Positions 6,770 through 16,295 of a stretch of 64,000 bases of DNA are shown piece by piece (position 1 is the stretch's first letter; every line of letters starts with the position of its first letter). The stretch is from NCBI GenBank assembly GCA_021613535.1, contig CP075492.1:12834001-12898000 (forward strand), written 5' to 3'. The notes under the pieces are model-generated. The model did not search any database. It saw nothing but the letters and a program-made list of their open reading frames with translations, and had not been told where the DNA came from. This stretch comes from Adineta vaga. Lineage: Eukaryota > Animalia > Rotifera. The translations under genes were made by a program, and so were the position numbers.

Positions 6770-9365
<2,596 letters not shown>

Positions 9366-9945
9366 TTTTACTCTCGAAATTAAAGAGATATCTAGAACGA
9401 AAAGAATTTTATATATATATATTTAGAATTTCGTAAGAATGAAAAATTGAGCAATTAATAAATTACATTCTTTACGTTAGAGTTTTATGAAATTTTTCTC
9501 GAGCTGAAATCTAGTCGATCGATCGAATATCGAAGAGAACATATTTTTAATTCTAAAGAAATATTAATCGAGTGAGGACATACATTCTTGTAGGCCTTTG
9601 TACCAAAGACAAATCAACAACAGAAAGAAATATTATTGGTATTTGAGAGAAAAAACGATGTATGAAAACATAATAAAATTCGATTGACATTGTATGTTGG
9701 TGACCTCTATCATGGAGAATTACATAGTACCATACAAGTTTTCTCTTTCTGATTCGAATTAGTGTTTAAATAAAGTTATTAGTGATCTATCAAATCTTAG
9801 AATTTTCTATTTTCTTGTAAAATGATTATGAAACACTTAGGTAAGGTGAAAAGGAATAGAACTTCGAGTTGATCTATGAAATTACATCATTTAATTGACT
9901 AAACTATTTTGTTACAAAAAATAGAAGGTTTGAAAATAGATTTAT

Positions 9946-10941
9946 TCATTGACGCAAACGTCCGATTGCTTTCCAATAAGTATGATGTTCGGAACTGGAT
10001 AGAGTATTGTAGTAAAAATCTTCGATTTGTGCGCGATGTTCATCACATATATCTTCGTTAGTCAATGGTAATTTATATAATGGTTCATAAAGAGTTTTAG
10101 CAATTACATTCGTTACTTCGCGTCCAGCAAGATTTGGTTTTAAAAATGTAAGAAAACTTTGTTGAAAATTATGCTGAGGATGATCATCTGATGGTATTCC
10201 TGCATATTCAAGAATTTTTCCATTAATACAAATCCATAATGGAAGAGAAGGATCACTTCCATTATGTTTTTGTAGATCTTCTTCAGAATAATAAACATCA
10301 GATGGAAAATCATTGAATGATTCAAATTCATGAGGTTGCTTTCTTGGAACGACTGGTTGATCATCTCGTAATCGATTGATATAGTCAGGTTGAACTTTAT
10401 AATATTCACAACCTTTTGTTATAACATCTAAATAACGTTCACGAGGTAGACCCATTGATTGATTTTTAACTTTAATTTGATAAGCATAAACAGTATGAGA
10501 TTGATTTTGATAATCAATACATTTAGTAATAATTCGATGATAAAAACATTCGATTTCATCTAAACGTATAATTTGATAATCAGGAATTAGATGAACAACC
10601 CCATGAAAACTTGCACCGGGACATGCTTCAATATCAGCAATTCCATTGAAACACCGAAAGACTAGTTTATGATCTGGACACATCGCTGGATAGGATATCA
10701 TCGATGTTATTTGACGAAGATATAACGATATAGGATTAATCATACTACCGATAGCAAAATACCAACAATAGCGTTTTCCATTCGGTAGAACAATTTCTGG
10801 TTCTTCTGGATTATTATTAGCAAGAACAGAGTCTACGAAAGATTTTTCTGGAACAGTTAATTTCGATTGTATAAGTTCACACGATAATTTAAAGTTAACA
10901 TCACTTGATGATGCATTTAATCGATGAAGTAAATGTGCCAT
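9946..10941 (-). CDS. Intronless gamma-glutamylcyclotransferase (GGCT/AIG2-like) domain fused to a MAPR-type cytochrome b5-like heme/steroid-binding domain, copy 1
   Basis: GGCT motifs YFAIGSM, HGVVHLI, LDEIE (catalytic Glu position) and PRERYLDVITKGC. Followed by YSEEDLQKHNGSDPSLPLWICINGKILE...LAGREVT...IGRL, resembling the PGRMC/neudesin/Dap1 domain. Alternative start at 10959. Confidence 0.78.
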   Translation of the reverse strand: MAHLLHRLNASSSDVNFKLSCELIQSKLTVPEKSFVDSVLANNNPEEPEIVLPNGKRYCWYFAIGSMINPISLYLRQITSMISYPAMCPDHKLVFRCFNGIADIEACPGASFHGVVHLIPDYQIIRLDEIECFYHRIITKCIDYQNQSHTVYAYQIKVKNQSMGLPRERYLDVITKGCEYYKVQPDYINRLRDDQPVVPRKQPHEFESFNDFPSDVYYSEEDLQKHNGSDPSLPLWICINGKILEYAGIPSDDHPQHNFQQSFLTFLKPNLAGREVTNVIAKTLYEPLYKLPLTNEDICDEHRAQIEDFYYNTLSSSEHHTYWKAIGRLRQ

Positions 10942-11312
10942 TGTGAAATACAAGATCATGTTTCTGTTGTATAATAAGTTAGAGATATTCGTACACTGAT
11001 TGGTATAACCAATTCAGCAATCAATGTCAAGCAGAAAGATGAGAACGTTGTGTCACTAATCTGCAGTATCTACTGTGCATTATTTTATAGCGCTCTGACT
11101 ATACATTGACATATAAATATAAATTAGGTCGATTTTCATGCAGATATGATTTCGTCAAGAACAAATCTTGGTTTATCTAGATCAGATCAGTGAGTTCCTA
11201 GACTCGTAGTGTTGATTTACTTTTATTAGGATTCAATAGATTCAATAGTGGATAAAAGCTCTAAAAAAGAATCAATCGGAATAAAATAGTATTAAGTTTA
11301 GTTTCCAGTATT

Positions 11313-12328
11313 TCACAAGACATTTCGAATATTTTTGTGGGAAAGACGACCGATGGGTATCCAGGATGATTCATTCTGTCCACTAGCAATTCTATTATGA
11401 TAAAAATCTTCGATTTGTGCACGATGTTCATCACATATGTCTTCGTTAGTCAATGGTAATTTATATAATGGTTCATAAAGATTTCTAGCAATTGAATTCG
11501 TTACTTCACGTCCAGCAAGATTTTCTTTGATGAATTTATAAAAGTGTTGTTGAATTTCATAGTCAGGATGATCGGTTGGTGGTAATCCTGCATATTCAAG
11601 AATTTTTCCATTAATACAAATCCATAGTGGAAGGGAAGGACACTTCCATTATGTTTTTGTAGATCTTCTTCAGAATAATAAACATCAGATGGAAAATCAT
11701 TGAATGATTCAAATTCGTGAGGTTGTTTTCTTGGAACGACTGGTTGATCATCTCGTAATCGATTGATATAGTCAGGTTGAACTTTATAATATTCACAACC
11801 TTTTGTTATAATATCTAAATAACGTTCATGTGGATAAGAACAAGGATAATTATTTAATTTCATTTGGTAAGCATAGGCGCTATGGATACGATCTTGATAA
11901 TCGATGCAATTAACTTTAATTCTATTGTAGCCAAATTCAACTTGATCTAAAATTGTCATATGATCACTAGATAGAAGATGAACAACTCCATGGAAGCTCA
12001 TTCCGGAACATGCTTCAATATCCGCCATACCTCCAGATCCTCGAAAAACTAATTTATAATCTGGACATTTTGCTGGATAGGACATAAGTGGTTTTATTTC
12101 ACGAAGATATAGAGAAACAGGATTAATCATACTACCAATAGCAAGATACCAGTAAAACTTTTGACCGTCGGATGAAATAATTTCTGGTTCTTCTGGCTTA
12201 TCATTAACAAGAATGGCGTCTACAATGGATTTTTCATCAGACGTTAGTTCCGATTGAATAGCTTCGCAAGATAATTTGAAATTTGCATCACTTAATGATG
12301 AATTTAAACGATGAGATGAACTTTCCAT
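11313..12328 (-). pseudogene. GGCT-MAPR/cyt-b5 fusion, copy 2, with a 1-bp deletion at 11640/11641 (pseudogene or sequencing error)
   Basis: Paralog of 9946-10941. Copy 1 has AGT GAT CCT where copy 2 has AGT G-T CCT. Restoring one base reopens the frame through WICINGKILEY...LAGREVT...WIPIGRL to TGA at 11313. Confidence 0.75.
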
Positions 12329-12753
12329 TATAAATTTTTTTAGGGTGTGTAAATTATGCTATTTACTATACATTAATCATTTTACGAGAATAATGTTTGA
12401 CCAATCAATTTTCATTCTTTTGTTTTTTCGTGTCACAGGTAGCTGATAGCGACTCAAAGTTTCTAATCTGCTTAGTCGTAAATCGTAAACAAAGAACACT
12501 TACTATGAAAAATTGCACTGTCATAAACATTTATAGAAATATGAATCTTGTATCCGTTAAATCTATATTCTGTAGAAAAATTTATTTCAGTAAACTTCGT
12601 TAGTCTTTAAAATTCAAAATATTCCAAAGTTTTATTGATGGAAAAACGAATTGTAATAGTAAATTCGTGATACATGAAATAAAATTTATAAAAAATATAT
12701 GTATATATGGCATTATATGCAATAGAAAATTGTGTACACTGCTTTTTTAGGTT

Positions 12754-14340: not shown

Positions 14341-16295
<1,955 letters not shown>

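Follow-up and report, generated by a model that had tools for sequence, protein, structure and literature searches.

The 64,000-nucleotide window analysed here (positions 12,834,001 to 12,898,000 of contig CP075492.1, assembly GCA_021613535.1) comes from the bdelloid rotifer Adineta vaga and contains two tandem paralogues, genes A and B, arranged head to tail on the minus strand. Each joins an N-terminal domain of the gamma-glutamyl cyclotransferase (GGCT) type to a C-terminal domain resembling cytochrome b5 and the MAPR proteins. This b5-like module is conserved on a known enzyme family and is unrecognised in the literature and Pfam annotations searched; it is not a rotifer-specific invention. 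Gene A (9946..10959, stop codon included) is a single uninterrupted open reading frame (ORF) of 337 amino acids (aa). Since the homologues begin at its Met7 (10941), translation probably starts there, which would give a product of 331 aa. Gene B (11313-12328) lies in two pieces in different frames of the assembly. The first (11641..12328) encodes an N-terminal extension, the GGCT domain and, as far as KHNGS, the opening part of the b5-like domain; the second (11313..11640), in the -1 frame relative to the first, encodes the remaining b5-like domain (PSLPLWICINGK...IGRLSHKNIRNVL*). GC content is about 30% throughout the window. Within the genome that was scanned (100.8 Mb, six contigs) the genes are mid-chromosomal, 12.8 Mb along a 20.4-Mb contig.

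In gene A, an N-terminal helical extension (10795..10959, aa 1-55) carries the conserved motif RLNSSSSD.NFKLSC and is modelled with helices at 16-33 and 39-46 (AlphaFold2). The extension is a feature peculiar to the bdelloid clade: alignment rows from bdelloids include it, whereas most protist members begin just ahead of WYFAIGSM. The GGCT catalytic domain (10345..10794, about aa 56-205) contains WYFAIGSM at aa 66-73 and an LDEIE motif, with the codon of Glu137 at 10549-10551. It is followed by the cytochrome-b5/MAPR-like domain (9949..10335, aa 209-337), in which sequence alignment and residue conservation point to His260 (10180-10182), Tyr291 and His308 (10036-10038) as candidate ligand residues. 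We recovered the motifs quoted in a first-pass annotation of this DNA, which had proposed the fusion from the letters of the sequence: WYFAIGSM in one gene and WYLAIGSM in the other, LDEIE and LDQVE, ERYLD.ITKGC, EEDLQKHNGS, PLWICINGKILEY, AGREVT and IGRL. A first homologue search with gene A returned 106 clusters of about 335 aa with E values down to 5e-179, the best at 78% identity from Adineta ricciae, and every named cluster was from Adineta or Rotaria. Comparison of genes A and B gives a ratio of nonsynonymous to synonymous substitution rates (Ka/Ks) of 0.3-0.5 in each segment, also beyond the frame break of gene B. Given these homologues and Ka/Ks values, the GGCT-b5 arrangement is not a chance match, and purifying selection is evident.

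GGCT-fold enzymes are known as single-domain proteins of the gamma-glutamyl cycle (GGCT, GGACT and ChaC) and also serve as tailoring enzymes that remove the gamma-glutamyl group of glutathione conjugates. In human GGCT, Glu98 serves as catalytic acid/base, and backbone contacts from the YGSNL loop bind the substrate. The full-length AlphaFold2 model of gene A, based on a 42-sequence alignment, has a mean confidence (pLDDT) of 91.1 and a predicted template modelling score (pTM) of 0.89. With this model, a Foldseek search of PDB returned human GGCT first (2i5t/2rbh/3cry; E 2.5e-10 to 1.2e-9, TM 0.72-0.74, root-mean-square deviation 2.4-2.9 over about 160 columns), followed by YkqA, AIG2-like proteins, ChaC2 and GGACT. 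The family profile also matched human GGCT among the PDB sequences (HMMER, E 1.6e-9), placing the family LDkiE under human LDEQE(98)G and WYfAiGSM (WYFAIGSM in gene A) under LYFAYGSN. Glu137, which corresponds to human Glu98, and the loop residues Gly71 and Ser72 do not vary in 42/42 sequences that span roughly 30% identity; gene B reads LDQVE at the Glu motif. By fold, catalytic Glu and substrate-binding loop, the last partial at its Tyr, the N-terminal half is, at the level of the model, a member of the GGCT superfamily of the human-GGCT type, in agreement with the GGCT-type domain with a retained catalytic Glu proposed in the first-pass annotation.

Human GGCT (C7orf24; 2i5t, 2pn7, 2rbh, 3cry; AIG2_2, PF13772) thus shares with the rotifer family its fold, the catalytic Glu and the Gly-Ser of the YGSNL loop. 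It also shares the C-terminal helix pair, where the family ERYLDII.KG lies under human PQYKKIICMG. Identity between the two is only 23-24%, and human GGCT has neither the bdelloid-only N-terminal helical extension of about 55 aa nor the 129-aa b5-like domain. The Tyr of the YGSL motif is Ile in 40/42 sequences, gene A included, and gene A scores below the Pfam cut-offs for both AIG2_2 (25.7 bits, cut-off 27) and GGACT (19.1, cut-off 22.8). Gene B exceeds the GGACT cut-off of 22.8 with 24.6 bits, and most homologues pass both AIG2_2 and GGACT. The family has invariant residues of its own (W66, R82, H123, R175, D178 and R206), which together with the Tyr-to-Ile replacement suggest a substrate pocket unlike that of human GGCT. 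The same replacement, the sub-threshold Pfam scores of gene A and the invariant H123, R175, D178 and R206, for which human GGCT has no counterpart, would also fit a protein that has lost cyclotransferase activity and acts as a non-enzymatic binder or scaffold. We consider this very unlikely, as the Glu at the catalytic position and the Gly-Ser of the substrate loop never vary among the 42 sequences, the remaining invariant positions are concentrated in the GGCT domain, and purifying selection is evident.

The C-terminal domain of gene A was also modelled alone (pLDDT 87.6, AlphaFold2). The top 44 Foldseek matches of this model were all MAPR or cytochrome b5 structures (1t0g, E 1.0e-3; 1j03, E 1.3e-3). 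A structure search independent of Foldseek, covering 48,161 representative chains, placed exclusively b5-fold proteins at ranks 1-16 (Z 7.7 to 3.1). These were led by PGRMC1 (4x8y; Z 7.7, 91 residues, 3.1 Å) and the Arabidopsis MSBP-type MAPR (1j03/1t0g; Z 7.1 and 86 residues for 1j03), and unrelated folds appeared from Z 2.3. MAPRs were aligned over 86-91 residues and classical b5 domains over 74-80. The b5 fold, which the first-pass annotation had suggested for this half on the strength of short motifs, is therefore established at model level. Among the PDB sequences, a profile of the last ~130 residues of 41 family members matched 1j03 (E 0.0022) and 1t0g (E 0.0032) through the hairpin motif. 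A profile-profile comparison with a classical b5 set (hhalign) gave a probability of 94% (E 1.3e-7) over the first 33 columns only. The Pfam Cyt-b5 model (PF00173) matched gene A with E 0.21 over 25 residues and the homologue P0078 with E 0.015, both below the cut-off, and the best named clusters in a language-model search, which serves as a lead only, were all Cyt-b5 (0.79). The structural match is moderate, with Z 7.7 and a TM of about 0.5, and a Z below 8 may reflect a common arrangement. Because the Z scores are moderate, homology of the domain to the cytochrome b5 superfamily seems likely but not overwhelmingly so.

MAPR proteins are marked by tyrosinate heme ligation (Y113 of PGRMC1, with Y107, K163 and Y164) and by an insert, MIHIR, which lies between helices 3 and 4 (bioRxiv 10.1101/2021.11.17.468889). 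The family shares with 1j03 a hairpin motif (Y/FT.EEL..H/YNG.D...P.W..ING..) and an AGR(D/E) helix. The segment from the hairpin to the AGRE helix occupies ~42 profile positions in the family compared with 25 residues in 1j03, could not be aligned, and is modelled as an extra helix of ~17 positions at the tyrosine site. The earlier remark that an insertion alters the region of the PGRMC heme-ligating Tyr therefore holds. No MAPR heme tyrosine is invariant in this segment; position 270 is Tyr in 27/42 sequences and Leu in gene A. A MIHIR-like loop of ~17 residues (YEPLYKLPLTNEDICD) precedes a long helix (306-320). It falls under the 1j03 insert KMSKNEEDVSPSLEGL with a weak score of 0.1 bits, the family KLPLNEEDL lying under KMSKNEEDV of the MAPR. 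Neither the sequence nor the model of gene A has an N-terminal signal peptide or a membrane anchor such as the transmembrane helix of MAPRs: the N-terminus (MAHLLHRLNASSSD...) forms amphipathic helices only and lacks a hydrophobic stretch. Because the heme tyrosines are not conserved and the membrane anchor is missing, we describe this domain, which is fused to an enzyme, as MAPR-like in shape and not as a MAPR, and the MAPR membership first proposed for it is not established.

Two histidines are candidates for heme ligation in the manner of cytochrome b5. The HPGG motif of classical b5 is absent from the C-terminal domain. A forced global profile alignment, with low per-column confidence, sets His260 of the family motif 'DHP' under the HPGG His, and His308 of 'EHRA' under the second axial His. 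His260 is kept in both window genes, and in the family in 25/42 sequences; 'DHP' is absent from the consensus of 46 non-bdelloid members. His308 is more constant, being His in 36/42 bdelloid-type and 36/46 protist members. Its replacements are mostly Cys (2 and 4 in the two groups, respectively), Met (1 and 2) and Gln (2 and 2), a substitution pattern that would suit an axial metal ligand, and Tyr291 of a Y(D/E)P motif is nearly invariant. All these ligand assignments rest on sequence alignment, not on residue-level superposition on PGRMC1.

One reading, in line with the proposal of the first-pass annotation, takes the domain for a true heme protein, with b5- or MAPR-like ligation, that would place the enzyme under heme or redox control. 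The b5 fold, to which MAPRs are the best structural matches, would agree with this, as would the conservation of His308 in bdelloids and protists, the ability of its main substitutes Cys and Met to ligate iron, and the placement of 'DHP' and 'EHRA' in the global alignment. Against it stand the restriction of the significant b5 alignment to its first columns, the uneven retention of His260, the lack of an invariant Tyr at the positions of PGRMC1 Y107 and Y113, where the family segment is ~17 positions longer than in 1j03 and predicted to be helical, and the chemistry itself, as the GGCT reaction requires no electron transfer. We regard this reading as doubtful, and heme binding of any kind by the C-terminal domain as less likely than not. 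Regulation by heme or a sterol is likewise conjectural, as is the relevance to desiccation or redox stress that the first-pass annotation had suggested.

Two further groups of proteins bear comparison with the family. Classical b5 fusions (sulfite oxidase, flavocytochrome b2, Ncb5or and desaturases) likewise carry a b5 module within a larger enzyme, and their b5 domains match the family domain in structure with Z 5.7-6.1 and, in the profile-profile comparison above, over its first 33 columns. There the partners are redox enzymes, which transfer electrons through a bis-His heme, whereas the family combines the module with non-redox GGCT chemistry and does not clearly keep HPGG and the second His. 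The second group comprises the fungal GliK/AclK-type cyclotransferases of epipolythiodioxopiperazine clusters (AclK_C, PF28338), GGCT-family enzymes that are about 250 aa long and carry an additional region at the C-terminus. Fungal GliK strips glutathione conjugates of their gamma-glutamyl groups, and we propose the same type of reaction for the family. In an atlas of protein clusters (Pfam 38.1), an Ascomycota cluster with AclK_C in 12% of its members aligned over query residues 52-326 (TM 0.47/0.62). For the rotifer cluster, the atlas assigns neither AclK_C nor any other family to the C-terminal half, and no fungal member was found among the named matches. AclK_C may be related to the C-terminal domain of the family, which we take as an atlas lead only.

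Closer inspection of gene B showed that, relative to gene A, one base is missing directly after the KHNGS codons, at window position 11640/11641 (GGAAGTG-TCC compared with GGAAGTGATCC). Because of this missing base, the ORF that starts at 12328 stops at 11501 after 275 aa. The remainder of the b5-like domain continues in the other frame, which is open for 108 codons down to a stop at 11313-11315. The first-pass annotation had taken gene B for one intact fusion gene. The motifs it quoted are all present, but it overlooked the break, and its gene-B motifs HPDYEIQQHFY and IGRL were read from the shifted frame. For the Ka/Ks values, the alignment and the tree we read gene B across the break, with N/X at the break.

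Taken at face value, the assembly could make gene B a recently inactivated pseudogene that has lost most of its b5-like domain, leaving gene A alone functional; another family locus (C4 14686690-14687671) is likewise interrupted by stops. The reads speak against this. Contigs of four public runs with the same species label (X1, X2, X11 and X18) were placed on 9600-12600, and the one-base deletion of the reference was seen in 0/4 read sets. X2 and X18 each have a single contig across the site, and in both runs this contig carries an additional T behind 11640, so that the frame of gene B is restored. The X18 contig (227 nucleotides) keeps gene-B-specific bases at 11627 and 11634, where gene A differs, and is thus in-frame gene B and not gene A; it is the sole informative contig for phasing the frameshift. 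In X1 and X11, a unitig of the same length (227 nucleotides) was placed on gene A and no contig covers 11620-11720. De Bruijn contigs drop rare variants and cannot phase the tract of ~200-245 nucleotides common to A and B, so a deletion that is heterozygous or strain-specific may be compatible with these contigs. Inactivation is also at odds with a downstream frame that stays open for 108 codons in DNA of 30% GC, with the Ka/Ks of 0.48 (Ks 0.49) between this part and gene A, with the intact A. ricciae orthologue of gene B (P0017, 338 aa) and with the RNA-like contigs that span the whole length of gene B. We therefore regard a pseudogene as unlikely. Gene B is probably functional, judging from these comparisons, and its one-base deletion is either an assembly error or a recent allele.

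The break falls within a tract that is near-identical in the two genes (10204..10449 in gene A, aa 171-252, and 11592..11836 in gene B, both on the minus strand). Almost all of the alignment columns from about 660 to 900 are identical there, and one 227-nucleotide unitig fits both genes. Synonymous divergence (Ks) of the two genes drops from 0.82 upstream of residue 171 to 0.13 across residues 171-252 and stands at 0.49 in the last 85 codons. This pattern suggests that the two genes were partly homogenised by gene conversion after they duplicated. A second stretch that is highly similar between A and B spans LYEPLYKLPLTNEDICDEHRAQIEDFY. In the GGCT domain of gene B, two contig versions of 11955-12038, each at about half depth, occur in 4/4 read sets and differ at seven sites within ~85 nucleotides (11955, 11969, 11972, 11996, 12010, 12011 and 12038); this region is either a block of dense heterozygosity or another short tract of conversion.

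Both genes look to be transcribed as unspliced messages in two separate studies. In the RNA-like runs X11 and X18, contigs are found only over 10004-10912 and about 11115-12427, with none in the intergenic stretches, whereas the DNA runs X1 and X2 do cover intergenic sequence. Over gene A, 10067-10890 is covered without joints, and the contigs of the two RNA-like runs show no splice joint in either gene, in line with the earlier description of both as intronless. The 'RNA' label of X11 and X18 is itself a guess made by the tool. The earlier description had contrasted the genes with intron-rich neighbours, and the contrast is upheld at least for the gene that adjoins gene A downstream (8852-9365, minus strand), an ABCE1 (RNase L inhibitor)-like gene with a split coding frame. 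Its 4Fe-4S motifs lie in two ORF pieces separated by a short interruption, consistent with an intron.

To establish how widely the fusion occurs, we searched 1.84 billion representative sequences with the C-terminal-domain profile. This identified 260 proteins at E <= 1e-3 (107 at <= 1e-10), most of them 260-340 aa long with the domain at the C-terminus. Among the best 146 of the 260 matches, Pfam detected AIG2_2 in 91 and GGACT in 78. Named members outside bdelloids are from Saprolegnia diclina, S. parasitica, Skeletonema menzelii, Minutocellus polymorphus, Dinobryon, Chromulina nebulosa, Pterosperma, Oxyrrhis marina and Lapot gusevi, so that the fusion is found in oomycetes, diatoms, chrysophytes, a prasinophyte, a dinoflagellate and a rhizarian as well as in bdelloids; the atlas adds Chlorophyta and Bacillariophyta clusters. 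In Saprolegnia diclina, two members carry consecutively numbered locus tags (SDRG_03161 and SDRG_03162), each from a contig of 1,218,947 bp. Animal members, among the named proteins, are limited to Adineta, Rotaria and Didymodactylos (D. carnosus). Two database searches named no member from any other animal, from fungi or from choanoflagellates. The first-pass annotation had recognised no such fusion in animals, which holds for named animal proteins apart from those of bdelloids; the fusion is, however, no rotifer novelty and belongs to a large protist family. The public annotations of family members read 'gamma-glutamylcyclotransferase' or 'hypothetical' only, and we found no literature linking GGCT with a b5 or MAPR domain or describing a GGCT-b5 family in bdelloids.

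A bacterial or archaeal origin was also considered. A pattern search across the genomes of 185,579 species gave 38 matches, none of which was confirmed by tblastn, and a close prokaryotic donor is therefore unsupported.

Some protist and environmental members extend the architecture. In P0266 (435 aa, from the Logan assemblies), a protist member, the GGCT and b5-like domains are accompanied by a GST N-terminal domain (aa 297-374) that scores above the Pfam cut-offs, a lead that may link the family to glutathione chemistry and to glutathione conjugates. Four environmental proteins of 560-601 aa (P0253, P0100, P0254 and P0108) contain two complete GGCT + b5-like units in tandem, and the gene for P0253, on a 16-kb contig, adjoins a REJ-domain gene.

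In the A. vaga genome, the C-terminal-domain profile matches five loci only, and all of them are GGCT fusions: genes A and B, one locus on C1 and two on C4, one of which is broken. The broken locus (C4 14686690-14687671) is interrupted by TAA and TGA stops and probably represents a copy in decay. Its annotated product may be a 300-aa A. vaga protein from a 15.2-Mb contig (P0109, I4U23_021800), which has only two partial family matches. Two AIG2_2-type loci without the b5-like domain (C3 12482603-12482878 and 14837484-14837723), on the chromosome that also carries genes A and B, are presumably canonical animal GGCT-like genes.

In a maximum-likelihood tree (LG+G4, 64 rows, 286 columns, midpoint-rooted), the bdelloid-type sequences form one clade (100/99), which falls into an unresolved group together with Lapot and chrysophyte sequences and unnamed environmental ones. 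The closest partners of gene A in the tree are A. ricciae P0001 (99/94) and A. steineri P0002, and that of gene B is A. ricciae P0017 (100/98). As each gene thus groups with its own A. ricciae orthologue, the tandem duplication is older than the split of the Adineta species. Several paralogue groups hold both Adineta and Rotaria sequences, which points to an early expansion of the family in bdelloids.

Bdelloids are known for massive gene acquisition and contain much foreign DNA. Together with the lack of introns, the lack of other animal members and the position of the bdelloids as one clade inside a protist radiation, this favours an old horizontal acquisition of the fusion from a protist, which we consider quite probable. 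The horizontal origin suggested by the first-pass annotation is plausible on these grounds, but the tree does not resolve the donor. Alternatively, the family could date back to ancestral eukaryotes, with rotifers keeping it by vertical descent and other animals losing it. Its broad spread over stramenopile, alveolate and rhizarian (SAR) lineages and green algae indeed implies that the family is old, the tree is unrooted and leaves the sister group of the bdelloid clade unresolved, and genes A and B are not subtelomeric. Vertical inheritance would, however, require many independent losses to account for the missing animal, fungal and choanoflagellate members, and it sits poorly with intronless genes beside an intron-containing ABCE1-like neighbour and with the bdelloid record of gene acquisition. 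We judge it improbable. Under horizontal acquisition, the family would have reached the bdelloid ancestor by transfer and then grown to about five loci in the A. vaga genome.

Taking these lines of evidence together, we think it on balance probable that A and B are soluble two-domain gamma-glutamyl cyclotransferases with a ligand-binding, possibly heme-binding, b5-like module and were acquired horizontally. By homology, Glu137 would act as the general acid/base in an attack of the substrate's alpha-amino group on the gamma-glutamyl amide that liberates 5-oxoproline together with the partner amine or peptide. The high whole-chain pTM (0.89) suggests that the two domains are packed rigidly, and the b5-like domain may be a ligand-binding module that sets substrate choice or activity. 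One candidate ligand is the hydrophobic part of a gamma-glutamyl or glutathione conjugate, proposed because of the GST_N fusion in P0266 and the GliK-type role on glutathione conjugates; another is heme bound through the conserved His308. What weighs against the overall reading is that substrate, ligand and domain coupling are inferred for every family member and that the case for horizontal transfer is built on a patchy distribution and a midpoint-rooted tree, in addition to the points already given: the Ile in the substrate loop, the Pfam scores of gene A, the moderate b5 match, the limits of the contigs and the guessed RNA labels.

A more ambitious interpretation is that the family forms an unrecognised ligand- or heme-sensing class of gamma-glutamyl cyclotransferases, in which heme bound by H308 as the single axial ligand, with Cys or Met in its place in some members, or the hydrophobic moiety of a glutathione conjugate gates gamma-glutamyl cleavage, and which arose in protists and was captured horizontally by the bdelloid ancestor. 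We hold this full scenario to be unlikely as it stands; if true, it would couple gamma-glutamyl and glutathione turnover to heme, redox or xenobiotic status. Independently of it, the fusion defines a whole uncharacterised enzyme family across oomycetes, diatoms, chrysophytes, green algae, dinoflagellates, rhizarians and bdelloids. If the b5-like domain has heme or a lipophilic compound as its ligand, the family would offer a rare example of a b5 module on a non-redox hydrolytic or cyclising enzyme, and ligand binding would offer an experimental handle on the control of gamma-glutamyl and glutathione-conjugate catabolism. For bdelloid biology, the family is a multi-copy, transcribed candidate for an ancient foreign gene kept under selection.

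Elsewhere in the window, a 178-aa ORF on the minus strand (14341-14877) opens with an end resembling a protein-kinase C-lobe and probably represents the terminal exon of a gene for a CDK-like kinase.

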